Position numbers and translations under genes: made by a program. DNA of 64,000 nt from Tubulanus polymorphus (lineage: Eukaryota; Animalia; Nemertea). Shown here in pieces: positions 34,916 through 57,710 of this stretch (positions are counted from its first letter, which is position 1; each line of letters starts with the position of its first letter). The stretch lies in NCBI RefSeq assembly GCF_964204645.1, contig NC_134030.1, positions 17,568,210 to 17,632,209 of the forward strand, written 5' to 3'. The notes beneath the pieces were generated by a model, which did no database searches, was not told the origin of the DNA, and was given only the letters and a program-made list of their open reading frames with translations.

Positions 34916-37900
34916 TTAACTTGATTGCATAAATTCTCGATATATTCGATCTACATCTATTTTTACTCTCAGTCTTTTATTGAGTTTTTTAAGTTCTGAT
35001 ATGATGTTATCTCTCGTCGTATCGGGGTCGGTGCTCCAGCAGCCGATATGCAGGTCAGAAAGATGCGGAAGATTATCGATTAATTCGACGATTGATTTGA
35101 CGAATAAATCTATATCGTGCTGTGTATTAATCGGCGCTGTGCGTAAATTGCAGAACTTTAACCAGCGAATTGATGAGACGTGTTTTAGTTGTTTTAAGAT
35201 GCAATTGTCCTGTTCCGGTCTATCAAGCCCGCTATCAATACTGACTACTCGCAGCTGATTTACCGCATCTGATGATAGATACCGAACAAGTGCGTCACCA
35301 TCAGCTTCTGACCGCAATACTATTGATAATACAGTCAGCCGCGGCAGGTGAGCTAGAACGCGGTTTGATTGTAAATAAAATCCGTCAATGACAAGACGCT
35401 TTAGTTTCCGCATTAAACCGACGCTATCACTGATTGCTACATGTTGATCTGTCGTTAGTTCGCGTAGTTCGCGCAGTTCGCGCAGTTCGCGCAGTCCGAG
35501 CAATCCGAGCAGTCCTCGCAGTCCGAGCAGTCCGCGCATTTCGTACGGTTCGAACTGAATTGATTCGATGTGTGAAGATTCTAACGCGTTGTTAAAATCT
35601 TTTAATCCCTCCGAACCGATCAAATTCTTATCGAATTTTACTCCACTAAGATGTAAGCTTTTCAAACTCGGAATGATGTTTATCAGCTCTCTCATCTTAT
35701 TTCTATCGAGCTGATATCCCCGCGACCTGAGATATAGAAGTTTTAAGGATGGATACGATTTGTGAATATTGACTGAAATATTACCTAAACGTTCCGCACT
35801 AACACCAGTAACTCCAGTATCAATAATCAGACTCTCCACTGTATTGTGTGTGTTAGTATCACCACTGATCAACTGCGCGTCAGCTCCAGATTTAATCACG
35901 TGACTTGTCTTAATCCAATCATTATTGAGTTTCTTGTAACATTCACCAGTGTCGTTGAATTCATCTCGCCACACAAACCAGTTTATACTGTTACTCTTCT
36001 TACACATAGTCAAGCACTGATCGGGTATTGGTGACCACCTGCGTGTATCTATTATCATACCGTGAAGACTAGTGTTACTCGCTATGGCTTTTTCCAATAC
36101 ACGGTATTCGTCGGGTTTCAGTTCGAAAATACCTTGTATGTAAACTACCTCGATCTGACATTGTTTGTGTTCTAGTATTTTTGCGAGCGCGTTTATCCAC
36201 GATCTGCTATACGCAGATACGATCAACATTTTCTGCATGTAGGGAACTATTTCACTAATGGCGTCGTCCGGCCAGTCGGCTTCATTCAGGCATATTGACA
36301 ACTGTTCAGATAAAACAGTTCTTTCGGATCTTTCGAGTTCGATGAAGCGTTCGTAATCGGGGATGAGCGCCATCTCCCTAGTAACCGTACCCAAGAAATG
36401 GGACTTCACTATTGTGACTGCTTTTAAATGTTCATCTATTAAAGTCTTGGAAAGTTCACCGAGGCCGCGGTTATACTTGTAACGATACAGCAGCCCTGCC
36501 ATGAATCTCGGGTATAATTCACCATATTTCACAAGTTCGTCCTGTAGTTGATCAAACGCGCATTTATTCCAGGGTATTTCACCACTGTTGTTGAATTGCA
36601 CGACCGAGTGTACCGCCGCCAGAAATTCGTGCACAGATTTGTGTATGAACCGTAGCTGGACGGAGCGGTCTGATTTCCGTCGCGGCGACACCTCTTTGCA
36701 CGTCAAAGCCGTCCTCTTCGATTCGTCGAGTTTGAGATGATTTTCGCTGAAGCTGTTTTGATGCTCGATGAGCGTCTTATATGCGACTTGACAAATTTCT
36801 TTAAGCGCTTCAGAATTTTCGATGTCCCCAAAAAAACATTCCTTCGACAAGTCGAGGCCCTCGCGTTTACTGATCAGAAAACATGTCAAATCGATGTAGA
36901 TATCGGTGAGTTTTGATGGTATCGTAATTTCTTCCTCGTCCATAAACAGACAAAAAAACATATGTAGTATCAGCGGGTTGTAGTAGATACTTTCAAATAT
37001 AGGTGGCACTGCGTCTTTAAGCTTGCGGAATAGCAAATATGGATTGCGCTCGGGGAATTTTCTCTTCATAATATCGATGACTTCTTCTTGTTCGAAGCCG
37101 GATATCGATACAACGGTGAATTTGGGATCAGTGACGATCTTGCTGCCCCCGGACTCACGTGTTGTTATGACGATATGCGCTTTCGGTAATTTATTGGTCA
37201 CGTGTACGATATATTCCTTCGCTTTATCGTTTTTCAACTCGTCGAAGCCGTCTAGAAAAAATAACGCTTTTTCTGCATTTTCCCGTAAGAATTCTTTAAA
37301 ACCATCAATCGGCAGAACCTTTCTGATTTCTGGATTCAAAAGATTTTCGTAAATGTACGTATAAATACACGCGTTATCAGCGGGCAGTTCATTTAACGGT
37401 ATATAGAATAACATAGGAAACTCCGTTGTTGATGTTGTCCAGGTTAACACTTGATTAACAATCTGAGTAGTTTTACCCATACCGGGTTCACCCACGAGGC
37501 ACACGGGTTTCATAGCACGCTTGTCATGAGTGAAAAGCTTCTTGAAATCATCAGGTAAAATCACTGGCGGCTCCTCACTTTCTTTATTTTCCTTCGGGTT
37601 TCGTTTTTGGGCTCGAATTTTCGCGTGTTCTTGGGTGAAGAAGTCGTTGAAATTGGTGACGTCATCGCTCCACCAAACCTCTTTGTAATTTTCAACATCG
37701 ATCATTCGTTTATACGTTTCTTTCAGGCTCTTCTGAACTTGAGTAACATCTGTAAAAATGAATTCAGTTTGAGATTTTTTAGAATTTCTATGGCGGCTGA
37801 TTTTGCCTCAAAATCATAGAATCAGAAATTGTCATGAGCTAAAATTTTACAATTGACAGCAGTTACAAAATATGCCTATGTACCAAAGAAATACTGAGTT

Positions 37901-40395
37901 ATTCTGCTATTCAACGTCCCCTAGTGGCCTTAAACAAAAAACATACTAGAATTTTTCAATTGATTTAAGAAATTACGTTAAAATTGAATGATGAAAAAAA
38001 ACCTGTCTGATCACATCACAACACATCGCAACAGAAAATACCAAGCAATTAGGAAGCTACAGGTCTCGGAATTTAGACCAAAAATAGGTACAAAAAGGTC
38101 TCAGGACGGCCATCGTGAGTCCGATCGACCCAATTTTAACTTTTTCTTATGCTGATGTGCGCTGTGAAGATATATACTTATAAAAGATAAAGGATATTGA
38201 TTAAAGCCATTCCAATATTTGATGAATTTTCATTATAAGTAATTTGTTTATAATTAAGATTGAAATTATGTTATTTTCGATTTTCAATTCTCATGTTAAT
38301 CAAATCATTGTAACCTTTAGAAAGTATCAAATCATCATTTCTTTCTTTAAAGGGAGTTTCAAGAATATTCATTATTTTTTCATCAATTACCTTCGTAATC
38401 CTAAACTGTATTGAATATTTTAGGATTTTTGGTGCCATTATGGAAAGTATCTATTAGTTCAGTAATTAAATATGTTTCATTTAATAGTATTTGATTAATT
38501 ACAGTAATATTATCTATTTTATTTTGTCTTCCATTAACTAAATTTGTTGCTGAGATATATTTTTTAATGTTTAAAAGTGAAAATAATTCATTGGTTTCTT
38601 TTATTTCAATTTTATATTCAGTTTCTTATTCTTCTTTCTTCATCTATAACAAAACTTTTATTAAAAAAAATTTTTTAGATATTTTATATTTAAAGATATA
38701 ACTTATACAAATGTAAACATTCTATGTTATAAATCTATATTATTTTACTAACACTTTACTCACACTTATTCATATAAAAAAATTTGAGTAATTCACTGTT
38801 TTTTTTAGTGAAGGAATATAATTTTATAGTAAAAACATAGTAAATCTAAATTATTTTGCTAGCACTTTACTCACTCTTATCTATATATGAGGTCTTTAAG
38901 GTATTTAGGAGCCGCACCATGGATACACTTGAATACTTGTATTATGTTTTTAGTTAATAAATTTAACAACTAAAAACATAATATATCTATACCATATATG
39001 AAATTATTAGAGTAATAGGGTTTTAGTTGTTTCATATCAGAGGTTGAAAGTTCGACGAAAGGTTCGGGATTTAAAAAATATGAGAATATAACTAATTGAT
39101 AATTAGTAATATTTTCATATTTTTAAAATTTTCGACCTTTCGTCGACCTTTCGACCTCTGATATGAAACAACTAAAACCCTATTACTAATAAAGCATAAA
39201 ACTCGAAGAAAGTTTATGGGCAAAATGTTTGGAAAAAGGCAAGATGCATGTAATTAGAATGGAACAGAGGCAAATTTGAAAGGCGTGCAATAATGTGGCG
39301 CTAATTAATTTTCGCGACTGAAAAATGAACAGTCGAGCAATTCATGCCTGAAATGTGGCTACAGAAACTGATCGTATGTTTACTAGATTTTGAGTAGGTG
39401 TCAGTCAAAAGTTCTCTAAATAGCATAAATATGTGTGAACTGGCTGCCTGTCAGCCATCTTGATTGTGAACAGGGACAATCCGAAATAACTGGATTCCAG
39501 GCGGTTGGACGGACAGACGAAAAGTGAACGTAATAGCCAGCTGGGCAAAAAAAACAATCATACGCCACCTGGTGGATAGAATGTCTTGAAATAATTTTCC
39601 ATCATTTTAGTTAAAGATTTGGAAATGGTTATTTTGCTAATGTGGCATTATTTGAGTAAACGCTATTTTGCCAATGGCTATTTATAATAAGATATCGTAA
39701 TAAAATATAACGATAACATCATTATATTGGTTTTAGGGTCAGGGTTTCGATAGGGTTGGGGTCTAGAGGGTTAGGGTGAGGTTTAGGGTCCGTTTTTACC
39801 CCTAGGGATAGGGTTAGGGTAAGGAAGGTGAGTCTATATCCAGTGAAAAATTACGGGTGGTTTTGAGTGAGCCCGGTGGTCTACTGGAAAGACGTTAGAC
39901 TAGCAATCTGCTGGCCCGGATTCGAATCCCGCTCTATGTTGCTATTATCTTTAACTCTGTTCTCCACACTTTCCTTGAATTTTCTAAATCACGCACCTCT
40001 GTGCGCATGCGCGGCATCAATGAGCCAATCAGAACGCGCCATTGGCAAAATAGCGTTAACAGGAATAATGTCGCATTGGCAAACTATCCACTAAATATAT
40101 TAAAGTACATTAAAATAAACTTGCCAATGCAAAATAGAGCAATGTTTCAAATTCGCCTATGTTCCATCCTAATTACATACATCTTTAGAGACATGGTCAA
40201 AGACTTCGGACCAGTCTTATGATTTAGGATTCAAGACTCAAGCACGACGAGTTAAAATCTATAATTACCGAGATTCTCAGCAGGTCTGTCGATAGTTTGT
40301 TTATCTCCAAGGTAAACAACATTCATCGTATTATTGTCACCGATTTGAACCATTTTCGATTTATCTACATTTATTCCTGTATAACTCTGTGCCAT
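34916..40395 (-). CDS. RHIM-NACHT-LRR-like NLR receptor; coding exons 40395-40269 and 37749-34916 (~985 aa)
   Basis: Walker A GEPGMGKTT, Walker B LFFLDGFDEL, IVITTR, NPLILH, FIHKSVHEFLAA and an LxxLxL-type C-terminus. The phase-1 acceptor (tttttacag) at 37749 matches the phase-1 donor (gtaatt) at 40269. The upstream exon encodes MAQSYTGINVDKSKMVQIGDNNTMNV. The splice join is inferred. Confidence 0.85.
39011..39187. repeat. ~177-bp imperfect palindrome (fold-back)
   Basis: agtaatagggttttagttgtttcatatcagagg pairs with cctctgatatgaaacaactaaaaccctattact. Confidence 0.9.
39639..40078. mobile_element. Inverted-repeat element containing TTAGGG-like units and a tRNA-like segment
   Basis: Perfect 20-bp inverted repeat aacgctattttgccaatggc (39659) / gccattggcaaaatagcgtt (40038); tggtctactgg..ggattcgaatccc at ~39877-39930. 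Confidence 0.65.
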
Positions 40396-40952
40396 AGTAC
40401 CACAAACTGAAAAACAGGTTTAGAATTCAGTCATTTCATCTCAACAAGTGCAGCACATTTTTCCTGACCTAATTGTTTTGTTCAGTATTTACACAATCAG
40501 CCTCTACTCATATTCAGACTGAAGTTTTCTTTGTTTCCGCTACTGATAAAGGATAATGGAATGTAGGAAAAAAATGGCCAGGAAAAAAAGGCCAAGGAAA
40601 ATTAATGAGAACTACTGACAATGTTAATTAAGCTTTCAATTTAATCTCCATCACAAGTTCGCATTTTGAACGTTAGAATAATTTACTAATGTTCATCCGC
40701 GACTGAGATGGCCTCGATCTCCCGAGAGATTTCCGACGACGTTACAAAACACAGTTGAAATTGTTTATTAGGTTTTTATCGTGTGAAAAATGCATTCAGA
40801 TAACGCGCCGGGGTCATCGACTGAGATATCAAATCACACGCCACAACAGGTCGCCATCCGCAAATGACTTACTTTCATTAGATGTTGCAACAACAAGACA
40901 TTAATTTATCTTCTAAAAATGCCTGAATACTGTCTTAATTTGCTGGATTAGT

Positions 40953-41068: not shown

Positions 41069-42136
41069 AGAGGCGCACACTCGACAATCTGACATCGAAA
41101 TGTAACCTGCATCGGTTTCTTTCAAGGATTTTATGTTGAGAAGCGAACAAGTGTAACATGTAAAACTTTCATTGATTAGACTAATGACATTTTAATACCT
41201 GCGCTACACTTTATCTAGACTTTCTGACGAATTCACATGATGATGAATGTTTAATATAATTAGTGATAATAGGTTTTGAAGATAAAATGATAAGAATTTA
41301 GTATATTAGAGCAGTTCAAAAGTCGAAATTTAGACACATCAGAAACAGCAATAAAGAAGCAGAAACACAGAAATCTTCTTGTGGTTAGTTTGTCGTATAG
41401 CCATTTTACGTAGAAAAAAAAACTGTGTCAGCAAAAGACAGACTTATGTTAGATATTGCAACGAGAAGACTTGTATCTTCTAAAAATGCCTGAATACTTT
41501 CTTAATTTGCTGGACCAGCGACCAGCAATCGGGAGCTCATCTATAGACCAGTGGAATATCGCGAATTCGCGCTCGCGCATACATGGAACTAGCCAGCGAT
41601 TTTTCCTTCGAGCTTTTTGAGCATTGAAATGAAACTGTTTTCCTCCCACAACCAAACCGAGGAAATTGTGAAGACAAAAAAGAATTCAAACGATATTTTC
41701 TCTAAAACGAGAACATATCACGTGGCACTTTGGATGCGTATTCTAAAATCGTACACATCGATGTAAGGGTAGGACTATTAGGTTTTAGGAGAGAAAGTCT
41801 TATGTCTGAACTCAACTAACGCATGCTTAAAGATCGCGCTCATTTATCAAAAAATAATTTTCCATCGCTTGACGTAGCGGGGAATATTGCAACGTTTCTG
41901 CTACAATCGCCTATAGTCGACAGTACTGTAACGCGCTATTCTCCTATATGATATTTGCCCTGTTTTGCACCTAAATCTACTCTACTGCCTTTATGTATTG
42001 TTAAATCTTTGAAGTCTAGATTAATGTTCCCCTCGTTGTCTACTTTCGATGAGTAATTGGAAAAGTGGGCTTTCAGATCAGAGGGCGAGAGGGCAAGACA
42101 CCACTCATCACCACAAGTAATTTTTTTCCCTAATAA

Positions 42137-45100
42137 ACGGGGGAGAATGAATACCAGCCAGAAAACAATAATGTTAATAAAAATCAATATTATTGCACAT
42201 ATTGTAAAAAATACGTCGATACATCTCATAAAACACGACATGAAAAAACTGCAAATCATATAAAAAATGTAATAGATTTTGAAACTCCAGAAAATTCCAA
42301 TGAAAGAAAAGAAAGATTAGAAAATATGAATGTGGATGAAATAAAATGTGAAGTTTGTAATGAATTTATAGTAAAAAGGAATTATAATAGACATCTCGAA
42401 TCACAAAAACACAAACAAAATTTAAGTAATAATGTTTTAGGAAAAGATTATTTCGATGATTAACCTCAAAAAGTAATAAAACCAACTTCAAAAACTAAAT
42501 CCATTTCAAATAAACCTTACATGGAAAATGTTAGAAATTATATTGATTCACTAGAAATAAAAGATACAATTGAAATTTTAGAAACATTACATAGTAAAAT
42601 TGGTCCTGCAGCTATTATATTTAGATTTTTTAAAGGTACAACAATAGAAGATTATAGTAAATTTAATGAAATAATAGAAAAAATTACTAGATCTTATAAC
42701 AGATGTTGAATATCCAAAAATTAGTATCTCTGGGAAAGTAAGTTTTATAAAGTCAGAAGAAAAGATTGATTATAATATTCAAACACACTCTGAAGAAATA
42801 ATTTCAAAAACACAAATAAAAGAAAAGTTAGAAAAAATATTTAATGAATTTAAACGTCATATTGAAGAAAGATATTTTGAGGGTTCTGGCTGAACATTGA
42901 ATGAAATTATATATTTAGATTTAAATGTTTATAATACAAAAAGAAATAAAACATCAAAAAGTAATAAAATGTTTAAAAATGATTCAAACTTTACAACAGA
43001 AAAGGATATTAAAGCATTATCTTATATTAAATTACCATTTACAACAAAAGCAGTAATAAATATTCAAAATGAAGATAATAAATGTTTTCTATGGTCAATT
43101 ATTAGTTGCTTACATCCAACACAGGAAAATGTTTGTAGAATAACAGATTATCGGAAATATGAAACATTATATAAAATTGATCAATATCCAGTAACTATAA
43201 AAATGATTTCTAAAATAGAAAAAGTTAATAATTTGAAAATAAATGTATTCGAATTAATGCAATTACCAAAGACAAAAGGTGAAAATATTAAAGATTATAC
43301 ATTGGAAGCTTTATATTTAACAGAATATTATGATGATGAAAATGCTATAGATTTGTTATATTACAAAGATGAAAATGAACATTATATGTGGTTAAAACAA
43401 ATTGATTTATTCTTTAGAACAGAAAGTGATCATCATCATACAATTTATCCATATAGAAAATGTTTATCTAAATTTATGACTGAGATTACATTATTAAAAC
43501 ATAAAGAATTATGTGATAATAAAGATTTTTGTAAATTAATAATGCCAACAGAAAAAGATTATAAATTGAAATTTACTAATCACAAATTTAAGAATATTGT
43601 TCCATTTGTAATTTATGGGGATTTTGAATCGTTGAATAAAGAATAAACTGATCAAGATAGAAAAGAAATATATAACAAAAAGCAATTATTAAAATCAATG
43701 GATAAAGGAAATGAATTAAATGAAGACACAATACAAGACCCACCAATCATAAATACAATTAAAAAAGTTCATCAAAGAGCTGCTGCTTATGGAATTTATA
43801 TAAAATCAAAATATCCTGAATTATATGAAAGTCAATATATTTCTTTTAGAGGTGAAGATGTAGTTACTGATTTTTGTAACAAAATGATTGAATTAGGAAG
43901 TGATTTTGCAAAATTAACAAAAAAACAAAAATAAAAGAATAGTTATGACAAAAGAAGATGAAATTGATTTTAATTATGCAACTCATTGATGTTATTGTGA
44001 AAAACGTTTTTATTCATTTGATAAAAAAGTTAGAGATCATGCTCATTTAAATTCAAAATATCGTGGAGCTGCTCATGAAGATTGCAATTTACAAGCTAAG
44101 AAAGTTAATTTCGTACCAATTTTATTTCATAATTTATCAGGCTATGATACCCATCTATTTATAAAACAATTATCGGGAAAATTGGGCGCAATTAATCAAG
44201 AAATAGAAGAATATAATGCTATGAATGGTGTAAAGGTAAGAAAATATGATTTTAAACTATTAGCTAAAACATCCGAAAATTATATTTCATTTCAATTTGG
44301 TTGCATTAGATTTTTAGATTCTTATAGATTTCTAGCAAGTTCATTAGATAATTTATCAAAAAGTTTAGTTGATAATGATTTTGTTATAACTCGATATTAT
44401 TATCCAAATGACCAAGATTTTAAATTATTGAGATACAAAGGTGCAATTCCTTATTCATTTTATAAAACACACAATGATTTTAATGTAACAGAATTATTAA
44501 AAGATCAATTTTATGATCAATTAAAAGAGGAGTATGTGAAAGACGAAGTGTTTAATAGAACATTAAATATTTGGAACCATTTTAAGATGAAAAATCATGG
44601 TGAATTAGTTGATTTATATTTAAAATCAGATGTTATGATATTGGCTGACATACTTGAAAAATTTAGAGAAGTTAATTTGAATCATTTTAATGTTGATCCT
44701 TGTTATTGCTACTCTAGTCCTGGTTTTACCTGGCAATGTGGTTTAAAATATACAAATGTAGAATTAGATTTATTAAAAGAACCAGATATGGTTTTATTAT
44801 TTGAAAAATCAATTAGAGGTGGAATTAGTGGTGTTATGGGAGATAGGTATTTTAAAGCAAATGATGAATATAAATTATTATATATTGACGCCAATAATTT
44901 ATATGGTTGGGCAATGATGCAACCTCAACCATATAAAAATTTTATATTAACAGAAGTTGAAAATGATGATAAAACTAATTGGGAAAGCGCAATTATGTGT
45001 TTAGAAGATGAAGCAGCAATTGGTTATTTCTTTGTAGTTGATTTAGAATATCCTGAAAATATAAAGTTTAAAACAAGAAACGTACCTTATTGCCCAGAAC

Positions 45101-47200
45101 ATTTAACCGTAGATGATAGTTATTTAAGTGAATACCAGAAGAAAAATAAAACCGAAAGATCATGTTTTTACAGAAAAATTAATACTTACTCAAAATAATA
45201 AATACAATTATATTGTTCATTATAGAATGTTAAAATTTTATCTAAAACAAGGAATGAAATTAAAGAAAGTACATAGATATATTGAATTTAATCAATCGAA
45301 GTGGTTAGAAAAATATATAGATTTCAATACTCAACAGAGAACCATATCAAAAACAGATTTTGAAAAAGATTTCTTCAAATTAATGAATAATAGTTTTTAT
45401 GGTAAGACATGTGAAAATATTAGAAATAGAAATGATATTGAATTAGTAAATAATTCTGAAAGATTAAGACATTTACAATCAAGTCCTAGACATTTAGGAA
45501 ATAAAAGATTTGAAGATTATTTAACAGCAGTTAAATTAAAAAGAACGTCAATGAAATTTAATAAACCTATATTCATTGGTTCAACTGTTTTAGAAGTATC
45601 AAAATTATTAATGTATGATTTTTATTATAATGTTTTACAACCACTTTTTGGGGAAAAGCATATTGAAATATTATGTTTTGATTCTGTAACAGCTGACACC
45701 CCAATATTGTTAAAATGTAATGATAAAATATTGATAAGAAGAATTTCATAAATAATTCAAAAACAAAATGAATGTTATATTTCATATGGTGAAAAAGAAT
45801 TAATACAAATAAATGGATTAATGGATGGTTGGACAAGAAATGGATGGAAAAAATTAAAGAATATTATTAGACATAAAACAAATAAGAAAATCTATAGAGT
45901 TAGAACTAAATTAGGGTTTGTAGATGTTACAGAAAATCATAGTTTAATTAAACGAAATGGCGAAGAAATAAAACCAACTGATATAAAAATTGGAGATGAA
46001 TTATAACATAAAAGATTTTTCCAACGAATGAATCATATGTCATTTGATGAAATAATTGACAATATTTATAACATAGAACCCGAAACTTTTGAAGAAAAAG
46101 AATATTTTATCAAAGGATTTTTCATGGGAGATGGTTCAGCAGGTGTGTATAATTATGTTTGGGGTAATAAATATTGCTGGTATTTATGCAATCAAGACTT
46201 AAAATTATTAGAAAGAATTAAGAAATTCTGTGAAGAAGTTTATTCACATAAAACATTCAAAATCATAGATGTTATGAAATCATCAGCAGTTTATAGAATA
46301 CTTGTAAATAATCCTAAAGATTTTGCTATAAAATATAATTATGAATTCATGCAATAGTGAAAAGTAATACTTCAACAAAAGAAAAGATAGTACCAGATTA
46401 TGTATTAAATGCAAAAAATAATTTAAGAAAGTGGTTCTTCATTGGATTCTATGCCGCAGATGGCACTAAAAAATTTACAAAGGATAAAAAGATAACATTT
46501 GCACAGAAAGGAAAAGTTGCTATATCAGGATTAAATATATTAAGCAGTTCATTAGGATTTAATATGAATATAGAATTAAATAAATCTAAACCAAATTGTT
46601 TTAATTTAAGGCATGTAGAAAAAGAATTAACAGAAGAAGTTAAAGATTTATTTGAAATATATAACCCATCAGATTATGTTTATGATTTATCAACTGAAGA
46701 TGGAACATTCAATTCTGGGTTCCCATTAATCCAAAAAAATACTGACAGTTACATACTAAAAATCAAGACAAATGACATAAAAAAGACTAAAAAACATTAA
46801 AACATCATTTTGATTATCCCAAAGATCATGCACTATTTAGCAATGATAATAAAAAGATTCCTGGTAAATTTAAAGATGAATTAGGGGGTGATGAAATGAT
46901 TGAATTTGTTGGGATAAGAAGTAAAATGTATAGTTATAGAACAAAAGATCATGAAGCTAAAAAGTTAAAAGGAATAACAAAACATGTGGTTGATAAACAT
47001 ATAGAATTTCAAGATTGTAATTCAATTGTAATGAAACATAAAATGAATTGTTTAAGATCAGAAGATCACGAGATGTACATTAATGAAGTTGAAAAAACTA
47101 GTTTGAATCCATTTGATGATAAAAGGCATATTTTAGATGATGGTATAAAAACATTACCTTATGGTTATCAAAACATACAATCAATATCATCATACTCGAA
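42137..47200 (+). pseudogene. polB: Protein-primed DNA polymerase B with N-terminal C2H2 fingers, an endonuclease-VII-like insert and an intein; many stops and frameshifts
   Basis: YGDFES, RDHAHLNSKYRGAAHEDCNL, FHNLSGYD, YLKSDV, IRGG, YIDANNLYGWAM, KLMNNSFYGK, FD/TDS, RSKMYSY, KLKGI. The start appears mutated to ACG at 42137, in frame with ORF 42521. Confidence 0.93.
45683..46740 (+). mobile_element. Intein with LAGLIDADG homing endonuclease at the PolB motif-C site; 2 in-frame stops and 1 frameshift
   Basis: FD|SVTADTPILL (block A), VDVTENHSL (block B), IKGFFMGDGS and FIGFYAADGT (LAGLIDADG), DYVYDLSTEDGTF (block F), LIQKN|TDS (block G, +1 Thr). Confidence 0.93.
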
Positions 47201-47226
47201 TTCACTATTGGCTTCTTCATTTTTAT

Positions 47227-48501
47227 TTAATTGTTCTTGTATAATTTGTTTAGGTTCTTCATTTCATTTATCTCATTTAAATAAAGTTCTTTCTTGTTCC
47301 ACATTTCATCTCGCTCTCTTTGTTTCTTTTTGTTTGTTAATTCGTCAAATGGAATTATAATATCGATGTTTAAATAATTTACAATCTTATTTAAAAAGAA
47401 TTCATAATTAATTGAATCTGTTATTCTATTTTCCAAATAATACATTAATATTTGTTTAAATATTTTTTTTATATTTTCCATATCTTCTTCTGTTAATTTA
47501 GGTTTTTCATAATAATCGTTAAATAATAAATATAAATACATTTTCTTTTGTTTTTGTTAAATGTTGACGGAATAATTGTTTTTATAATATCTTTTTTAGT
47601 TATTTCACCATTTTTATTTTCTATTATTTTCATTTTTTTAAGCCATTGCATATATTCTGGTGTATGATCTTCTATAGAAAATATTTTAAAAATTTCATCT
47701 AGATAATTTAATTTTGGTTCTATGAGAAAATTTCTAGTTTTTTCTTCACCCCATGAATTCTTTTGCCATCCACAATCCACAATCAACACAAAATAAAACA
47801 GTACCTTCTTGTCTTAAGGTCGCGTAATTACATTGTGGACATTTTCGTTTATAATTTATTGGTAATAGATCTTCATTAAGCTCTTGGTATTTTCTTACAT
47901 TTTCTTTATGTTTTATTGTTCTATTATGTAGATTTGAATTACTTGTTGTAATAATCAATTTACAATATTTACAATAATATGTTTTTCTTGTTAATTCATT
48001 ATATTGTTTTTCCAACTTTTCAACTGTTTCTTTATTATCTGGTAACGTTTTCTCATATTTTATTTTTTCTAATAAATTATTTTTTCTTTCATTGAATTCA
48101 GTTTCAAATTTATTAGAAATATTATCTATATGTACTTTACGAAATTGATGATTCTCCCAATCTTCTATATTTTCAGGGCTATATTTTATTCGACAAGGCT
48201 CACAGAAATGATCTTTTATATTATCCTTATCATAGAATAAGAAAGGTCTTTTCCAAATAATTTCAGGTTCAACTTCAACAGAATTACTATTACTTTCGTT
48301 ACTATCAACATTAGCCGTTGCGCCATTAATTTTACACTTCTCTGAATGTTTTTTAACATAATTTCTTGAGAATAATTTATTACATTTTGGACAGTTTAGT
48401 TTAGGGGGTTTATAATTTTCATCATGTTTTTTCATATGTCGAGCCATATTACTTTTTCTTAGAAGTTCACCACAAATTTCACATGCTATCTTCTCATCCA
48501 T
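47227..48501 (-). pseudogene. Polinton C2H2 zinc-finger ORF with downstream frameshifted segments
   Basis: CEICGELLRKSNMARHMKKH, CPKCNKLFSRNYVKKH, YCKYCK..HNRTIKH; continues through ORFs 47493-47789 and 47227-47541. Confidence 0.7.
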
Positions 48502-48559
48502 TTATTAGGGAAAAAAATTGCCTGTGGTGATGAGTGGTAATTTTTTTATGTTATAAATA

Positions 48560-49662
48560 ATGGTAGAATTAAAAGAATACAGAATATTTGTTGATTCTAG
48601 AAGACTTACAAATTATAAATCACATAATTTACTAGTACAATTAGATAGAGAATTTAAGAATCGTGTAGATTTAAAATTAGTTAATATAAGTGTATGTAAC
48701 TCATTTTACAATAAATCGGATAAAAGTTTTGAACATAGAGGGTTTATGATTTATGTGAGAAATAAAGATAAATGGTTTCATATATTTTTAAAACCAGGAT
48801 TATATAATTTAGAATCATTAGCGCAGGAAATTGATAGAAGAGCTCGGTTGAAAATCGGGGGCATTTCTGTATTTGAAATTAAATTTAATAAAATTGATAG
48901 TACTAATAAAATAAGAATAAAGATATCTAATGAACAACATAAATTTATGGTAAACAAACCACTGGCTAAAATGTTAGGAATTAAACCGCTTACAGTTACT
49001 GGAAACGCAGAAGGCAGCTCAAATATAATACCTTTTACACACTTTTATATTTTTTTTTATCATAGATTGTTTATGATTCATGATAAAAATATGGATAAAT
49101 GGTATCATCTAGACCATCAAGACCAGGATTATATACTTTAGAAACATTATCTCAAGAAATTAATAGAAGAGCTCGGTTAAAAGTGGGTGAATCTGTTGGG
49201 TTTAACATTAAATTTGATAAAATTGATAGTACTAATGAAATAAGAATAAAGTTAACTAATGAACAATATAAATTCATAGTAAGAAAACCATTAGCTAAAA
49301 TGCTAGGAGTTAATCCAAATAAAGTTTATTCAAATGTCGATCCTACGCCAAATATAATACCTTTTACGCACTTCTATATTTATTGTAATTTAATTGATCC
49401 TACAAAAACATTCGAAGCAACTAAAGATACAATTTGTAATTCTGGTTTATTAAATATTTTACCATTAAAAAATGTCAAACAATTTCGAACTCAAATAAAT
49501 TATAATTTAACTGAATGTGATTTCAAACCTTGTATTCCACATTTCAATAATTTTGAATTAGAAATAAGAAATCATAATGGTTATTTAATTGATTTGAATA
49601 ACTTTCCTGTAATTTATGAATTAGTTATAAGATGTAGAGTAATTTTTTCACTATATCAATGA
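48560..49662 (+). pseudogene. Probable minor capsid (penton) gene with an internal tandem duplication
   Basis: FYIYCNLID..LLNILP..FELEIRNHNGYLIDLNNFPVIYELVIR resembles penton C-termini; ~48740-49050 is duplicated at ~49070-49380. Confidence 0.6.
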
Positions 49663-51141
49663 ATATAACTGTTGGACCGAGTATATGTTTTGGATTTGAT
49701 TTTAAAGGTGAGAAAGAAATGAAATTTAACATTAATGATGTAATTACACATATCAAAAATATTGCATTTTCTAATGAAACAACATTTGAGTATGAAAAAA
49801 CAATAGATAAAGAAACTTTAAATGTAGAAAAGATAACTAATTTAATTAGAGAATCTTTAAGATTTTATTAATTAGATGAAGATTTTATCATAGATGATAT
49901 TAAAAACATATTAACGGAAATATATGATAATCATAAAAGTAGTAATGAAATAAATGTTGAATTAATCATCACTAAGATAACTAAATATTTTGAAGATAGT
50001 AATTTTTTTGATAAATGAATGAGTGATAATAAGTGGATAATAACTGGATTATATAATGGAGCATTACTATCAGTTGGAACTGTTGGTTATTCAATGGTAT
50101 TAAAAAAGGTCTTCAAAATGGGAAGTGTTAATGTTGATAGATTTGATATAAATGATATCTTAAAATTAACATTAGCAGTTACTTCATCTAATTTAACTAT
50201 TGATTATTTAGAAAAACAAAAATATATTCCTCCCATATAAATACATAATTTTTTTGCTAAATAAATGGCTTCTGCAATTATAACTACTATAGGATCGGCA
50301 ATTGTTAACGCTTTAGCATTTAATGGTGGCGGTTATTTATTTAAGCATATTGATAAAAATAGTTCATTAGGAGAACAAAGAAGAAATAATTTAGCATTAG
50401 AGAAATATAATAAAGCAGCAGAAGAATACAGAGAAAAACGACAAAACTATATGGATTATATTAACAAGGAATTATATGATCAGAAGATTTCACATAGAGA
50501 TTTTCAATCAGTTGATGATGCAATGAGTTTATATAACGCAGTAACCAATAAAGAAAAATTACATCTATACAAACCTAAATTATCAGATTATTATACCCCA
50601 AGTAAAGAACAACAGAAATATGAAATAATTTGGATTTTAGGTGGAACAGTTATTGTTATATTTGTAGCATATAAATTTACTAATTAGTAATTTTTTTTCT
50701 AAATAAATGGAAGATAAAGTTGATAGTATTGATATTATTCCTCATGATATAAATAAAACTAAATTAAAAATATATTTAGAAAAACAAATATTAGAATTTG
50801 AAGGTGACTTAAAGATAAAAAAGAAAAAATATTTAAAAAGGAAAATTATATATTATCTTATTATTAGTGGTTCGGTTACAATTAGTTCTGTAATAACATT
50901 TCTTGCAATATTCAGTCCATTAACACCTTTTGCTATATCAATCGGTGTATTAGGATTAAGTTCAAGTGTTTTAACTGGTATAAGTTCAAAATTAAATATA
51001 AAAAGTAATAAAGAAAAAATTAAAACTAATATAAAAGAAATTTATAAATTGAAGAATACACTAGATCATATAATAAGTTTAAATGGTCATATAACAGTTG
51101 AAGAACAAGATAAATTATTAAAAGAATTAATAAATTATTAA
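49659..51141 (+). CDS. Cluster of small Polinton ORFs (49659-, 50019-50240, 50265-50687, 50707-51141), several with hydrophobic segments
   Basis: Each follows a TAATTTTTT..(A)ATG motif; predicted membrane segments such as IIWILGGTVIVIFVAY. Confidence 0.6.
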
Positions 51142-51157
51142 TTTTTTAATTAAATAA

Positions 51158-52553
51158 ATGGTAGATGGTTTTCCAAAAGCTTCCCAATATAATAAATAAA
51201 TTAAATATAATATTCCAGCAATAGATTTTAATAAAGATATTACATATAGAAATGAAGTTTTAGATTCATTAACTAATTTAGAAATTTATGTTACTGAAAC
51301 TAATAATTTTAGTGCAAAGATGGAAAATATATTTCATGTATATTTAATTAATTTAAAAAAATTGAAAGATGAAAAACAATGGTTATTAAAATCTAATATG
51401 AAGTATTGGCAGAACCAATTAAATTTTGCTGTTTATTGTGCAACAACAGGATGTGGAATTAGTTGGAATGATCATTTGAATAATTCTAAATATGAATTAA
51501 TTCAAAGTTTATTTAGATTTCATACATACTTTCAAATCAGAATAATATTAAATGAATTAGAGTGCGCTTTACCAGGATCTAGGTATTTTAAAGAATTAGA
51601 TAATAATATTAATTTATCAAAGTTTTATAAAATTTGTAATGAATTTAATATAGATATAAATAATTCTGATTTTAAATTGGAACAATAAGATCACTTCCTT
51701 GCCCTAAAAAGATTGCAGAATATTGTGCACTTCCCATACCATCTAATAGTTTGTATAATATCTATAGTAATAAATTAGGTTATGGTAAAATAGAAACTAA
51801 GGATTTAGAAACATTAAATTTCAATAAATTACCGACATTTTATGATAATTTAAAACAAGAAAACAATAATGGTTGGGTTTATTTCATTTTAGAAAATAAT
51901 GAAGGTTTTACAAAATCAGGTATACAAAGAATAAATCAATCTATTAGAACTTATTTGATATGTATTTTAGGTGCGCAAGTTGAAACAAGATCCCCAATAA
52001 TTGGAAATTTAAATACATCATTTGATACACAGAAACAATTCAAAGTATTATTTGAAGATTCTATTCATAATGATAAAAATAGATCGATTCCAGAAAACAT
52101 TGTGAGATATCAAAATTATTTAGATAAATCACATATTAGACTAAATTATTGTATAGGCCCTAATCTATTTATTATTTCTAACGATTTAGTATTAAAGATG
52201 GGAAACATAATTGGTTATAATAATCTAATTAAAACTGCAACAATAAATAATTCATTTGGATTAAATGATATAAATAAAAAGATTATTACTGCTCCAAAAT
52301 TAATGGAAGGTGAAAAAATAAAAAACACATTCAATCAACAGAAACTAAAACTAAAAAAATTAAATTGCATAATGATTCTAAAATAAAAGATTACAATACA
52401 TCAGAAAATATAAAAACTGATAATATTCAACATGATATAATTAAAACTGATAATGATAATAAATTCCATGAAAATACTAAATTAGCTTTAACTTGTACAG
52501 GAATTGTTATAGGAGGAATATTATATTTTAAATTTTATTTTTTTATTATATAA
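51158..52553 (+). pseudogene. Polinton ORF of unknown function, broken
   Basis: YWQNQLNFAVYCATTGCGIS..LFRFHTYFQIR..YLICILGAQVETRS; hydrophobic C-terminus. Confidence 0.55.
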
Positions 52554-53467
52554 ATGGATGTAGAAGGTGGAGAAGATATTGGAATGGATCCTTTAGATGA
52601 AACTGGTATAACTGATGAATAACAACCTGATTTTAGTGAAACAAGTTTTAATGACGGTAATGAGCCAGGATATAATAATAATTTAAATATGCCTGATTAT
52701 GTTTAAAATGCAGAATCACAATTAAATCCTGAAAATTTAGACCCAGATTTAGTAAAACAAGATTTAGATAATTTAAACAAAATAGAGAAATTAGAATATA
52801 TAATTGAAAATTCTAAACTTAACATAAATGATGAAGACGTTGGACCTTTAGCAGATAAATTAAGATTTTTAGATAATGGTAAATGTTATTATCGTTTGAA
52901 AGGTGATTATTATATTGATATCTCTTATAAAAAAGAAGAAAAAATAATAGCAAAATCAACTTTAAAAAAAATTAAAACCAGATATAATTGAAATAATAAG
53001 TAATAGTAATGAAATAACTGATGTTACACAAAAAGAAATAGATGATAATATAGACGTATTTAAACAAAAAATTAATGAATTATTTGAAATAATCAAAAAG
53101 AAATCAGAAACAGAAACAACTTCTGAACAGAATAAAACTTCCAAAACTAATAAACTTAATTCAAATAAAGTTCCAATTGAAAAACTTTTACCGAATGGAT
53201 TAATTGATGCAACAGATCAAGAATTAGAAGATTTAAATAATATATTTTCTGATAAAGCAATTAGAGAAATTGAAAGTATAAGACATGCATCTGATAAAAT
53301 TGCGCATGATAAAAGTATAAGAGATTTAAAAATTAGAACTTTAGAAGATGAATTATTTAAATCAAGAAAAGAATCGGAACAAGTAAAATTAGATAGAGAT
53401 AATAAAGTTAAAGATAAAATTGCGCATGATAAAAGTATAAGAGATTTAAAAATTAGAACTTTAGAAG
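52554..53467 (+). pseudogene. Acidic/coiled-coil Polinton ORF, truncated by a rearrangement
   Basis: ATAAATG start; stops at ~52619 and ~52704; ends in a 55-bp direct repeat. Confidence 0.45.
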
Positions 53468-54436
53468 TTTTCTCATTAGATGATTATAATTTATTTATGC
53501 ATTATAAAGATTTATGGTTAACTAAAGAAAATAGAAATAATATGATATTTCAGGGTATTCAATCGGAAAGCCATAATAAAATAAGATCAGGAGCTAATGA
53601 CGCAATAGTCACTCGTGCCACAGATAAATTGATTAAAAAGATTTATGGAAGCAAATATAAAATTCCATTAGACTTTGAATTGATAAATAATAATGCACCT
53701 TTATATAAATACGCAATTCAAGAAGATATTATATTTGAGATAACATTTGCTCCTGTAAATGAAATTGTATTATCTAGCGTTGTTAAAGATATGGGTTATA
53801 AATTATCAAATATATGTTTAGAATATGACACAGTAACTAATGAAAATATTGCTAGCACAATTCAAACTCAATACAATCAAGGATTTTCATTATTTTATGA
53901 TTATATTGATAAATTTAAAACTGTAACTATTAATGCAAATTATTCTCAAATGAATTAATGAGAATACTAACTTCCCAAGAAGATCTATTAAAGGTATATT
54001 AATATTTTTTACCATTGCAACAAATTCTAATGGCGCAATAAAGGTTGATAATTATTATAATCCTGAAATAACAAAAGTAGAAATAACTATCGAAGGAATA
54101 GCAAATAAAATATTTTGTCAAGGAATGAGAATGATAGATCAGTGGCCAGAAATTAGAAAACATTTTATGAATGAAAAAGTAAAATCATTTGAAAATTGTA
54201 ATATTAATCAAATTGATTATTATACCGGCAATAAATATGCATTATGGTTAGATTTTAGAACAACAGAGGATAATTCATTACATGGTTCTGGGAAAAAACT
54301 ACAAAATACTAAAGATGGAATACAATTATTCATGACAAAGAATAAAGGAATCAAAAATTTCAAAATGCACATTTATATTATATCTGACGCACAATTAAAT
54401 ATTGTAAATTCACAATTAGATAGTATTCAATATTAG
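53468..54436 (+). pseudogene. Probable major capsid protein, N-terminus deleted
   Basis: YKDLWL..IPLDFE..LSNICLEYD..PRRSIKGIL..YNPEITKVEITIEG..KYALWLDFR..LHGSG..DAQLNI: beta-rich, recalled as Polinton MCP-type, and placed next to integrase and ATPase. Confidence 0.65.
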
Positions 54437-54466
54437 AAATATAAAGTTAAAATTAAGGATATATAA

Positions 54467-55595
54467 ATGGGTGGTAAAAAAACTCCTAATACTAAAGAAC
54501 AATATTTAAGAAATTTATATTACAACCCTGAGTGTTCGGTTGCTTATTCTTCTACTAAAAACATATGGCGTCAAGTAAAACAAGATAAATTAGATAAGAT
54601 AATCCCACAAAATTTAGTTAAATATAAAGATATAAATGAATTTATGTTAGAACAACCAACATACACAACACATAAAAAAAATTGTTAGAAAATATAAAAC
54701 TCGTAAAACTATGGTAAGTCATGTAGATCAACAGTGGCAAGGAGATTTAATTGATATGAAAAATGTTAAGAAAGATAATGATGATTATTGGTGGTTATTG
54801 AATATAATTGATATTTTTAGTTGTTATGTATGGAGCTTCCCACTTTATAGAAAAGATGCTGTACAAACATCAAATTTTTTAAGAAAATTTCTTTCGGATG
54901 ATAAACTAAAACCAGAAAAAATACAATTTGATGATGGAAAAGAGTTTGATAATTCACTTGTTCATGAACTCTTAGATAATCATAATATTAAATATTTTTC
55001 AACAAAATCGGATAAAAAAGCAGCAGTTGTTGAACGATTTAATAGAACATTAAGAACAAGAATGTGGAAATATTTTACAGCAAATAATACTTTTTAATGG
55101 ATTGATGTTTTACCAAAATTGATAGAAGGATATAATAATTCTTATCATTCTTCTATTGGAATGAAACCTATTGATGCTAGAAAACCTGAAAATGCTGAAA
55201 TTGTTTGGAATAATTTATATGGAGCATTTCTTGTAGATGATTTTGGTGAACCTAAATTTAAAGTTGGTCAAAATGTTAGAATTTCTAAGTATAAAAAGAT
55301 ATTTGACAAAGGATACGATCGAAATTTTACTAGGGAAATATATAAAATAAAAAAGGTAATAACAACAAAACCATATGTCTATAAATTAGAAGATTTAGAT
55401 GGTGAAGAAGTTGATGGCTACTTTTACGAAGAAGAATTAAGTTTAACTACTGAAAATCTAGAACAAGAATATAAAATTGAAAAAGTATTAAAAACAAAAA
55501 CTATTAAAAGAAAAAAATATTCTTTAGTAAAATGGGTTGGATGGCCAGATAAATTCAATGAATGGATATTATCAAGTAAAATTAAAAATACATAA
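54467..55595 (+). pseudogene. Retroviral-type (rve) integrase with C-terminal chromodomain; frameshift at ~54685, stop at 55095
   Basis: QWQGDLIDM, IIDIFS, IQFDDGKEF, AAVVERFNRTL; EYKIEKVLK..SLVKWVGWPDKFNEWI. Confidence 0.92.
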
Positions 55596-56021
55596 ATGAA
55601 TAAGGAATTATTCATATTTGAGCCTCATAATATGTTAATTTCTGGTGTAACAAATTGTGGAAAAACTTATTTTATATTAAATTTATTAGAAACTGTTTAT
55701 AAAAACTGTTTTGATAATATAGTATTATTTTGTCCAACATATGAATTTAATCAAACTTATGATAGAAATATTACTAGAAATAATAAATTTATTATATTAG
55801 ATCCTAAAACAGTAAAAGAAAATTTAGATAATTGTATTAAAATAGCAATTGATATTTATAAAGGATCAAATACATTATTCATTATAGATGATTGTGCTAA
55901 TCTACATGATTCAAAAGTTAGAGAAAGTGAGTTATGTTATTTAGCTTTTTCTGGTAGACATTTTGGGATAACAACATGGGTTTTAAATCAAAAATATAAT
56001 TCAATTGTTAAAGACTTATGA
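55596..56021 (+). pseudogene. A32/FtsK-like packaging ATPase, C-terminally truncated
   Basis: ISGVTNCGKT, FIIDD, SGRHFGIT..LNQKY. Confidence 0.88.
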
Positions 56022-56030
56022 ATTTATTTA

Positions 56031-56305
56031 AATTCAACTAGCTTGTTAATCTAGTTGAATTCTAGTTACATTCTAGTTGAATTCTAGTTATTGGTAGTTG
56101 GAACAAAATCGACTAGATTTAACAATATTTTAACTAGCTTGTTAATCTAGTTTAATTCTAGTTACATTCTAGTTGAATTCTAGTTGTTAGTAGTTGAAAC
56201 AAAAATCAACTAGATTTAACAAGAAATAAACAAAAACAACAATATTTCAACTAGCTTGTTAATCTAGTTGAATTCTAGTTACATTCTAGTTGAATTCTAG
56301 TTGCA
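56031..56305. repeat. Three ~100-115-bp CTAG-rich repeat units replacing the ATPase 3' end
   Basis: caactagcttgttaatctagttgaattctagttacattctagttgaattctagtt occurs three times with minor variation. Confidence 0.85.
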
Positions 56306-56334
56306 ACAACACAACTAATTTATTTGTTATACAA

Positions 56335-57230: not shown

Positions 57231-57384
57231 TAGAAAAAAAGCAAAAAAATAATTTTTTTAATTAATTGAATATTAATTGAATAGCTCACTACTTTTTTCT
57301 ATCTATGCGGAGCAATTAAATTTTCCAGATAAGTCATTTCGGATTCTAGATATTCATTATTTTAATTAATTTATTTTTTTAAAT

Positions 57385-57710
57385 TTAATCAACAATTTCT
57401 AAATCATGATGTCCATCTTCATTTTTTCCATGATAGATTATTTTAAATCCTTCTAAATCTTTTAATTCCTCTGTACTCAATGAAACCCATTTATCAGGTA
57501 AAAATACTTTAAATTCTCTCGATGTACTAACATTACAGTAGCTTAAATTAGCTGATACTTTCTCTCCATATTTAGTTTTTATCTTTTCTAATTTCAATAT
57601 TTTATGTTCAATTTCTTTTGTAACATCAACTAACTTTTTTATTTCAAATTGTTTTTTGCTGGTTTTATTCTGTTATTTATTGTTGCTAAGAATGCTTTTC
57701 TATCTCCCAT
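57385..57710 (-). pseudogene. Small Polinton ORF, possibly OB-fold/ssDNA-binding; one internal stop
   Basis: ATG at 57710 follows the TIR-like promoter motif; KIKTKYGEKV..FKVFLP. Function is a guess. Confidence 0.35.

Follow-up and report, generated by a model that had tools for sequence, protein, structure and literature searches.

The window, by which we mean the whole 64,000-nucleotide stretch of Tubulanus polymorphus DNA under analysis, carries on its minus strand a gene whose large NACHT exon is preceded by short cassette exons. The gene and the element that interrupts it comprise the following features.

34916..37749, minus strand: one large coding exon that runs through the stop codon and encodes NACHT, helical domains and LRR-like repeats (NACHT, about 37507-37052; P-loop GEPGMGKT, 37492-37469; beta/alpha repeats, about 36229-34943)
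37750..40268, minus strand: 2,519-nt intron that separates the NACHT exon from exon C and includes highly repeated segments
40269..40406, minus strand: exon C, a 138-nt cassette of phase 1-1 with a complete RHIM motif, next to the NACHT exon (ATG, 40395; core matched by Pfam, 40371-40321; VQIG tetrad, 40350-40339)
42052..58089, no strand assigned: Maverick/Polinton-like element, 16 kb, AT-rich (GC 24%), between units A/B and exon C
59735..59830, minus strand: cassette unit B, 96 nt, phase 1-1, a short variant without the RHIM core (..GINAENVRDDEEQTVDRPAENL)
59936..60121, minus strand: cassette unit A (ATG at 60110; canonical tetrad IQLG at 60059-60048)

A LINE lies directly after the stop codon.

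The NACHT exon starts at 37749 after the acceptor ttttacag (minus strand) and is open over its full length of 943 codons. Its product matches Pfam NACHT (PF05729) with 63 bits against a cut-off of 26.7, and Walker A (GEPGMGKT) and Walker B (LDGFDEL) both occur and do not vary in the alignment. All Pfam LRR families fall under their cut-offs in this exon (LRR_14 scores 17.4 against 40); in an AF2 model of the NACHT-LRR protein (pLDDT 62.8, with 70-89 in the NACHT and repeat region) residues 507-935 form alternating strand/helix repeats. A Foldseek search with the whole model recovered full-length NLRC4 (4KXF), NLRP3 and NOD2 with E-values of 4e-20 to 2e-17, at TM-scores that are low (0.25-0.40) because the relative orientation of the domains in the model is uncertain. 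The fold-level support indicates that this nemertean gene is, as the initial annotation had supposed of an invertebrate sequence, a bona fide animal NACHT-LRR NLR, and it is apparently intact. Pfam searches for the death-fold domains CARD, PYD and DD gave no match in the exon C peptide, the NACHT exon or the N-termini of paralogs, in agreement with the same annotation; the missing death-fold effector does not bar membership of the NLRs.

Exon C has a good acceptor (ttttcag, just before base 40406) and a good donor (CTCG/gtaatt, just after base 40269; here and below the slash marks the splice), both read directly on the minus strand and the same as in all units of the family. The symmetric exon of 138 nt first described is thereby upheld: its length amounts to 46 codons' worth and both ends are in phase 1. 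From its ATG the peptide starts MAQSYTGINVDKSKMVQIGDNNTMNVV and ends ...DRPAENL. The last base of exon C (G) and the AT after the NACHT-exon acceptor form a D codon, and from this junction the NACHT-LRR frame stays open until its stop codon at 34916. The proposed in-phase splice from 40269 to 37749 is thus in frame as predicted, and the NCBI models of 13 paralogs use the same splice. These models join ...RPAENL straight to D-V-x-Q-V, and we would expect no further coding exon inside the intron, in which contig depth is very high at 38083-38878, 39476-39674 and 39874-40072. The linker had been called short, which holds in relative terms only, the RHIM core lying about 100 residues before the P-loop. 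The ORF track had been said to miss exon C; the mechanical ORF list has it as a 47-aa ORF only, which a 60-aa cut-off would leave out.

Because exon C has an acceptor and no in-frame stop upstream of its ATG, belongs to a cassette present in about 60 copies and is itself preceded by two units, it may be an internal exon and not the start of the protein. The description of an N-terminal RHIM module is therefore correct as to kind, RHIM-class modules being the sole type found at the N-terminus, but exon C is a cassette and not necessarily the first coding exon. Unit B has the acceptor and the donor (G/gtaatt) of the other units, and its join to exon C would be in frame (ENL-V-C-G-T-M-A), as in the paralog models. 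Unit A is diverged at its 3' end, where a candidate donor (GAAT/gtgagt) would make a 186-nt phase 1-1 exon, the exon end being putative; it falls under the Pfam RHIM threshold. The Maverick-like element between these units and exon C has 70-bp terminal inverted repeats and a 6-bp target duplication (TCGATG), encodes a protein-primed polB and a chromodomain ORF, and presumably lies within an intron of the gene, outside its coding sequence.

In the exon C peptide the tetrad VQIG is followed by DNNTMNV, and this D-N-N-x-hydrophobic run is one that we take to resemble RIPK3. The peptide matches positions 5-21 of the 22 in the Pfam RHIM profile (PF12721) with 22.6 bits and E 7e-5, above the curated gathering cut-off of 20 bits; in the genome-wide scan the score is 22.3 bits. 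The tetrad fits the consensus (V/I)-Q-(V/I/L/C)-G (PMC9444067). The Pfam scan, which had been suggested as a check on the original assignment of a RHIM core to the VQIG peptide, thus bears it out. When all six frames of the 268-Mb genome were scanned, just five matches exceeded the cut-off. Three of these are exon C, its 99%-identical duplicate and one paralog exon, and each has a NACHT exon downstream of it on its own strand. The chance that any one match should lie at most 3 kb upstream, on the same strand, of one of about 20 NACHT exons is about 1e-4; three were observed to do so.

These figures bear on the notion that the match is a chance likeness in a short peptide, or that exon C is non-coding. 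The motif is short, a phmmer search of the peptide against PDB sequences finds nothing, and just three units of the family surpass the Pfam cut-off. However, so few matches over 2 x 268 Mb translated in six frames, more than half of them at NACHT exons, the retention of splice sites and phase in about 60 units, and the inclusion of unit exons in NCBI models make this notion, already disfavoured, highly improbable.

The genome holds approximately 18 intact NACHT paralogs. Of the cassette unit exons there are about 60 copies, nearly all of which precede a NACHT exon of the same strand by 0.3-7 kb; the acceptor TTTTTCAG/T and the donor G/GTAATTATAGA are common to every unit. In the NCBI models of 13 paralogs, from one to seven units run in frame to the NACHT exon at ...RPAENL/D; the corresponding proteins cover 69-99% of the NACHT exon (at least 98% in 10 of the 13). 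The best protein match outside Tubulanus in a database search has 27% identity to the NACHT family, which appears, from such comparisons, to be lineage-restricted. Unit number and sequence are highly variable among paralogs and NCBI isoforms, and the DNA of one paralog contains a 10-copy array of 21-aa repeats. A period of 21 residues is that of one rung of the HET-s beta-solenoid. Exon C is the family's top-scoring unit against the RHIM profile, just above that of its paralog on C56, and because the highest-scoring unit is here the one proximal to NACHT, the window gene is the best test object in the family.

Most units of the family score under the RHIM cut-off and many are without the tetrad (RKSG, SIIG or a deleted core), a degeneracy that fits either fast turnover or relaxed constraint; several pseudogenes of the family and orphan unit arrays are also present in the genome. 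Conservation in the exon does not exceed that in the intron beside it, and purifying selection is not demonstrable from it. For the window copy and its 99% duplicate, unlike the 13 paralogs, no protein of at least 90% identity is among the database matches, and NCBI may not have modelled these two copies as coding. In the sequencing data searched, the stretch matched three DNA contigs, in which the introns are covered too, and no RNA run; one run presumed to be RNA gave no match.

A rival reading is that the units are a RHIM-derived, disordered and fast-evolving tail that plays no part in amyloid signalling, any signalling then passing through the NACHT-LRR body or other partners, or that the window copy is a silent or decaying duplicate. 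The degenerate and core-deleted units, the pseudogenes and orphan arrays, the want of a matching NCBI protein or RNA run, and the insertions (the Maverick-like element in the presumed intron and the LINE at the stop codon) all accord with it. Yet the 943-codon exon is open from end to end, the unit nearest NACHT keeps a complete RHIM above the cut-off at three loci, splice signals are intact in all units, and the DNA that encodes the 14-residue RHIM core is identical in the window copy and the C56 paralog. On balance we regard a tail of this kind, or a silent copy, as rather unlikely.

We consider it probable, with some reserve, that the locus encodes an intact nemertean NLR with RHIM-derived cassettes in the effector position and a RHIM amyloid output. 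The N-terminal place of the effector would be taken by short symmetric phase 1-1 cassettes descended from RHIM. If ligand drives oligomerisation of the NACHT domain, then the RHIM tails would be clustered and would nucleate a RHIM-type cross-beta assembly, and this assembly would recruit RHIM-bearing adaptors by homotypic templating. The output would be tuned by the number and kind of units, which differ among paralogs and probably among splice isoforms. Here we infer that the window copy is transcribed and spliced as modelled, that its motif forms amyloid, and which partner it meets.

The best candidate for recruitment is a putative partner on another, unlinked contig: a TICAM/TRIF-like TIR-RHIM protein encoded by an ORF that combines a TICAM-type TIR with a RHIM of 21.7-22.3 bits. 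A profile of this ORF and its homologues matches the TRAM TIR (2M1W, 3e-15) and the TRIF TIR (2M1X, 1e-6), and TICAM2 is the top Atlas match of the ORF. Its RHIM is the sole match to the NLR-unit profile outside the NLR clusters genome-wide, at a weak E-value of 0.12; the same search otherwise returned NLR-linked or orphan pseudogene units only. The window contains no second motif-bearing gene, and no cognate-motif effector stands beside the NLR. A scan of all six frames exon by exon, which is weak for intron-split genes, gave no match to HeLo (PF14479) and none to PF17111 above its cut-off, and the scans run on the genome identified neither a RHIM-bearing kinase nor an MLKL-like executioner. 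The search for RHIM partners that the initial annotation had recommended yielded one candidate, the TIR-RHIM protein, and in these scans no kinase and no MLKL- or HeLo-like executioner. Elsewhere, an ORF ending in a RHIM was noted in a GC-rich block whose ORFs have neither introns nor an assigned family and may derive from a virus.

Variability of the units can also be read as a mark of sensing. The RHIM units might be bait, an integrated decoy for pathogen RHIM proteins or RHIM-cleaving proteases, with cassettes that track pathogen variation. Both kinds of pathogen protein are documented in mammals (the herpesvirus RHIM proteins M45 and ICP6, and the RHIM-cleaving protease EspL; PMC9444067). 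Between close units all differences are non-synonymous and outside the core, which together with the great variation in unit number and sequence among paralogs and isoforms, and the RHIM-ending ORF in a possibly viral block, would suit a decoy. On the other hand, animal NLRs normally sense by their C-terminal repeats and use the N-terminus as output module, a viral origin of the GC-rich block is only putative, and any pathogen ligand is hypothetical; we think a decoy quite improbable. A broader proposal, doubtful in our estimation, is that of a lophotrochozoan NLR family in which variable RHIM arrays, from one unit to ten tandem 21-residue repeats, would serve as tunable nucleators of amyloid, templating the TRIF-like TIR-RHIM adaptor, or else as an integrated RHIM decoy for pathogen mimics of RHIM; exon duplication and alternative splicing would then determine the number of RHIMs.

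Returning to the favored reading, in which RHIM cassettes serve as the output module, NLR signalling by amyloid templating has so far had experimental proof in fungi and bacteria only. As in fungal NWD2/HET-S and PNT1/HELLP (with the PP motif, or 'fungal RHIM') and in bacterial BASS-NLR systems, a short amyloid-type motif stands N-terminal to a NOD and repeats, and templating onto a partner with the cognate motif would be expected here too. In those systems, however, the cognate-motif effector adjoins the NLR and is equipped with a HeLo domain or another that targets membranes, whereas the neighbors of the Tubulanus gene lack the motif; and the Tubulanus protein is an animal NLR-type NACHT with LRRs, not WD, TPR or ANK repeats. 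With mammalian RIPK1, RIPK3, ZBP1 and TRIF, which form the necrosome hetero-amyloid, it shares the Pfam family and a tetrad within the consensus, and the Tubulanus genome likewise holds a TRIF/TICAM-like TIR-RHIM protein; the mammalian motifs, though, reside on a kinase, a Z-alpha sensor or a TIR adaptor and not on an NLR. To our knowledge, animal RHIM amyloids act downstream of kinases, ZBP1 and TRIF, and none downstream of NLRs. The cRHIM proteins of the Drosophila IMD pathway (PGRP-LC, PGRP-LE and IMD) similarly place a RHIM-like motif on an invertebrate immune receptor (PMC4262963), but these receptors are PGRPs with a divergent motif consensus, while the nemertean motif is nearer the vertebrate consensus and exceeds the Pfam cut-off.

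The closest likeness is to Branchiostoma floridae, for which RHIM-NACHT-repeat proteins such as BF82280 were described computationally by Kajava, Klopffleisch, Chen and Hofmann in 2014, as were tandem arrays of two to three RHIMs in proteins of several invertebrates (PMC4262963). The caution voiced earlier, that RHIM-NACHT proteins might already have been reported from invertebrates, was therefore warranted. In both animals a RHIM, recognized by sequence profile only, occupies the usual death-fold place of an NLR-type protein, and the amphioxus proteins are still a prediction. Tubulanus differs in being a nemertean, hence lophotrochozoan, and in carrying its RHIMs as separate symmetric cassette exons. 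The layout has already been described from amphioxus, and Tubulanus is a well-supported further example and not a new kind.

A 2024 survey counts Nemertea among the phyla without NLRs (PMC11508797), which the Tubulanus family contradicts. The splice signals of the family are intact, its peptides are short and easily tested, and the genome that contains it also encodes a TRIF-like RHIM adaptor. With RHIM-NLRs expanded in another animal lineage, independent of the first, an ancient metazoan origin of this wiring gains support, and, should the variable arrays prove to work as a tunable nucleator or as a decoy, NLR-to-RHIM amyloid signalling would be placed inside Bilateria and tied to the TIR pathway.

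The 138-nt exon at 40406-40269 on the reverse strand (exon C) is preceded by the acceptor ttttcag directly before base 40406, has an ATG at 40395 and ends at a donor, CTCG followed by gtaatt, after 40269. It is in phase 1 at either end. Across the predicted junction a D codon arises from its last base and the AT behind the acceptor ttttacag (37749), and from there the frame is open as far as the stop at 34916. In a list of open reading frames exon C appears just as an ORF of 47 aa, and the large coding exon downstream (37749-34916, the NACHT exon) as one of 929 aa; direct reading of splice signals and frame returns the exon C coordinates and peptide of the initial annotation unchanged. That annotation placed exon C at the N-terminus. 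An N-terminal RHIM module stands, but since exon C has an acceptor, and no stop lies between acceptor and ATG, other coding exons may precede it. The short linker also described is right in that the two exons are predicted to join directly; the RHIM core itself lies ~100 residues ahead of the P-loop.

The 42-aa peptide that begins at the exon C ATG matches the Pfam RHIM family (PF12721) with 22.6 bits (E 7e-5), above the curated cut-off of 20 bits, and in Pfam searches run exon by exon it matched no other family. Its tetrad, VQIG, is canonical and conforms to the consensus published for RHIMs, (V/I)-Q-(V/I/L/C)-G (PMC9444067). A phmmer comparison of the same peptide to PDB sequences gave no match, the query being too short. 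Scanned in all six frames, the whole genome has PF12721 above cut-off at only five places: exon C, its duplicate at C6:18.09 Mb, a paralog exon on contig C56 and two unrelated ORFs. The chance that a random match falls within 3 kb upstream of one of ~20 NACHT exons, on the same strand, is ~1e-4; three of the five matches do so, which excludes chance as the explanation.

The NACHT exon matches Pfam NACHT with 63 bits, while its scores against Pfam LRR families are all under their cut-offs. An AF2 model built on 25 aligned sequences has a mean pLDDT of 62.8, with values of 70-89 in the NACHT and in the C-terminal region of alternating strands and helices. In Foldseek the full length of this model finds matches in NLRC4, NLRP2/3/5/9 and NOD2 (E 4e-20 to 1e-15), and it is these matches of predicted structure that identify the product as an animal NLR. 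As the initial annotation had it, CARD, DD and PYD are missing: Pfam detects no death-fold domain in exon C, the NACHT exon or the N-termini of the paralogs. Within the LRR region a short-period repeat (35434-35555, reverse strand) encodes RGLLGL/RELREL runs and varies in length among paralogs; one DNA-run contig has 38 other letters there instead of 116 nt.

The closest proteins to the NACHT exon come from Tubulanus polymorphus (Nemertea): 13 NCBI models, labelled 'uncharacterized', with 57-78% identity; the best match outside this species has 27%. In the 77 contigs (268 Mb) of the assembly there are 18 intact copies of the NACHT exon and several broken ones. The NCBI paralog models open with one to seven copies of a cassette related to exon C (a unit), each starting M-A-x-S-N-P-G-I-N and ending R-P-A-E-N-L, with joins of the form ...ENL-V-x-G-T-M-A... 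between units and ...ENL-D-V-x-Q-V between unit and NACHT exon. The latter is identical to the predicted in-phase join of exon C to its NACHT exon, as proposed in the initial annotation. Every unit shares the acceptor TTTTTCAG followed by T, and the donor G followed by GTAATTATAGA; these common splice signals, together with the paralog junctions, are the main support for the predicted splice model of exon C. In sequencing runs the stretch is matched by fragmented DNA contigs, introns included, and the one run presumed to be RNA gave no match to it.

With the exon C peptide as query 24 units are found in the genome; a profile built from 19 units raises the number to 61. Almost every unit is located on the strand of a family NACHT exon, 0.3-7 kb upstream of it, the remainder forming orphan arrays on contigs C1, C8 (2.39, 3.59 and 3.81 Mb) and C9 (4.83 Mb). 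Among NLR-length proteins, including those of other species, units were found in T. polymorphus proteins only. We considered, for three of these orphan arrays, whether they might be parts of non-NLR effectors. For the array at C8:2.39 Mb this is not supported: a fragment of the start of a NACHT exon lies downstream, marking the array as pseudogene debris. Downstream of the C8:3.81 Mb and C1 arrays there is no same-strand ORF of at least 150 aa and no sign of an effector.

Some paralogs depart from the common layout. In one (L012, G000:C9:3605409-3606116) the unit exon consists of 9.9 (about ten) tandem copies of a 63-nt/21-aa repeat, MAESNPGINAENAEIVQIGDK, corresponding to the unit's first half; the array ends IVQIGDK directly before the NACHT exon, and the NCBI model (P0013) takes in seven of the copies. 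The NCBI models P0006 and P0012 (G000:C6, ~22.26-22.31 Mb) also belong to this NACHT-LRR family; where RHIM units would stand they have immunoglobulin domains, along with a signal peptide and a transmembrane helix, giving an Ig ectodomain-TM-NACHT-LRR architecture. The head of P0009 is instead helical and, by eye, coiled-coil-looking, over at least 300 aa.

Two further units lie upstream of exon C, from which they are parted by a 16-kb element; with the element removed, the distance is ~3.3 kb. These features, and the other mobile elements of the window, are as follows.

Upstream units and mobile elements in the window
Ends near 60295, upstream of unit A: candidate non-coding first exon
60121-59936, reverse strand: unit A; own ATG, canonical tetrad (IQLG), 3' end diverged
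59830-59735, reverse strand: unit B, a short form, core absent
42052-58089: AT-rich element, 16 kb, GC 24% against ~38-40% around it
Ends of 42052-58089: 70-bp terminal inverted repeats, 97% complementary, with a 6-bp target duplication, TCGATG
55119-55595: chromodomain ORF in this element
47746-48501, other strand: zinc-finger ORF in this element
44182-45751: split protein-primed polB (PF03175) in this element
29733-34321, reverse strand: LINE-type retrotransposon, directly 3' of the NLR stop codon
33536-34321, reverse strand: LINE ORF1, 261 aa, coiled-coil
29733-32660, reverse strand: LINE ORF2, 975 aa, reverse transcriptase
5258-10173, forward strand: LTR-retrotransposon pol region, GC 48-50%, several ORFs (aspartyl protease, RT, RNase H)

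The 16-kb element looks like a decaying Maverick/Polinton-type element. The LINE may have taken the place of the original 3' UTR of the NLR gene; its 975-aa ORF, considered as a second NLR, was rejected as such, being the LINE reverse transcriptase.

A segment of at least 24 kb, carrying the NACHT exon, exon C, the Maverick-like element and units A and B, recurs 486 kb away (G000:C6:18091388-18115447; L002, L039 and L040) with 99.2-99.5% identity; it is a very recent duplication, or else a haplotype that the assembly has retained. ORFs are intact in both copies, yet no database protein is at least 90% identical to either.

A rival explanation is that the units are a decaying or non-amyloid tail, or that the window copy is silent. 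The RHIM cut-off is passed only by the NACHT-proximal unit, at three loci; in other units the tetrad reads VQMG, SIIG, RKSG or the like, or a 14-codon deletion has removed the core. The window unit differs from its closest paralog only by non-synonymous changes, all of them outside an identical 14-residue core. This is suggestive and is no test of selection: exon C is 86-92% conserved against 93-96% for 150 nt of the preceding intron, which is thus no less conserved than the exon, and the core offers no synonymous differences to count.

The initial annotation proposed a search for RHIM partners. This yielded a TRIF-like candidate; a HeLo-type domain was not among the results, six-frame, exon-by-exon scans of the genome for HeLo and HeLo-like domains giving none over the cut-off.

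Loci outside the NLR family with RHIM or RHIM-like sequences
G000:C3:26754333-26757389, ORF 1084-2352, reverse strand: 434-aa open frame (L025)
G000:C8:4543000-4553932: GC 52% block of packed intronless ORFs on one strand (L028 and L034)
G000:C7:3977744-3977797, reverse strand: exon-sized open frame, 17.9 bits, below the RHIM cut-off (L030)

The N-terminal domain of L025 has 64 homologues. A profile of 30 of them, compared to solved TIR domains, matches TICAM2/TRAM (E 3e-15) and TICAM1/TRIF (E 1e-6), and the best Atlas look-alike is TICAM2; a single-sequence AF2 model of this TICAM-like N-terminus (pLDDT 37) was set aside. The C-terminal part contains a RHIM, GVQLGNSNTMTV (VQLGNSNTM), at 21.7-22.3 bits, over the Pfam cut-off, and the tail consists of acidic 11-residue repeats. 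With a TICAM-type TIR and a RHIM, L025 is thus, as judged from its domains, a TRIF-like TIR-RHIM adaptor. Outside the NLR clusters the RHIM of L025 is the sole match to the unit profile, a weak one (E 0.12), and L025 is a candidate partner for the RHIMs of the NLR family. A complex prediction that paired exon C, in two copies, with two copies of the RHIM segment of L025 scored 0.04, which tells neither for nor against an interaction.

The second non-NLR match over the PF12721 cut-off is a 229-aa ORF with a terminal RHIM, CVQLGNGNTMEV, in the C8 block. The ORFs around it, including a repeated 275-aa paralog family, have no Pfam match, and the block may represent an integrated element of viral type that codes for a RHIM protein. 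The C7 frame encodes a transmembrane helix followed by a RHIM-like sequence, NVQIGNNNFATVYMG (NVQIGNNNF), and may belong to a membrane receptor whose RHIM is juxtamembrane, like that of insect PGRP-LC.

The units might conceivably act on the input side, as an integrated RHIM decoy with which the NLR would detect proteases that cleave RHIMs or pathogen proteins that mimic them. The best-supported reading, drawn by analogy with NWD2/HET-S, fungal PP/RHIM pairs and the mammalian necrosome, is that they would form the output module of the NLR. As an output module, the units would be clustered by NACHT oligomerisation; once clustered they would nucleate a RHIM-type assembly, which would recruit RHIM adaptors, the TRIF-like L025 being the first candidate.

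Kajava et al. (2014) reported tandem RHIMs in several invertebrates and, in Branchiostoma, RHIMs 'at positions usually occupied by' CARD-related domains, including the RHIM-NACHT-repeat protein BF82280 (PMC4262963). The architecture was therefore already known, by prediction, and the initial annotation's caution over earlier reports of invertebrate RHIM-NACHT proteins was well placed. BF82280 has a layout like that of the T. polymorphus NLR, and both are known from sequence alone. We found no literature on RHIM-NLRs in lophotrochozoans. The window RHIM-NLR is a real and well-supported further example of an architecture predicted in amphioxus. A TRIF-like TIR-RHIM architecture, as predicted for L025, exists in a nemertean; and whereas Nemertea are given as one of the phyla without NLRs in a 2024 survey of metazoans (PMC11508797), T. 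polymorphus has at least 18 intact NACHT-LRR genes in one family alone.
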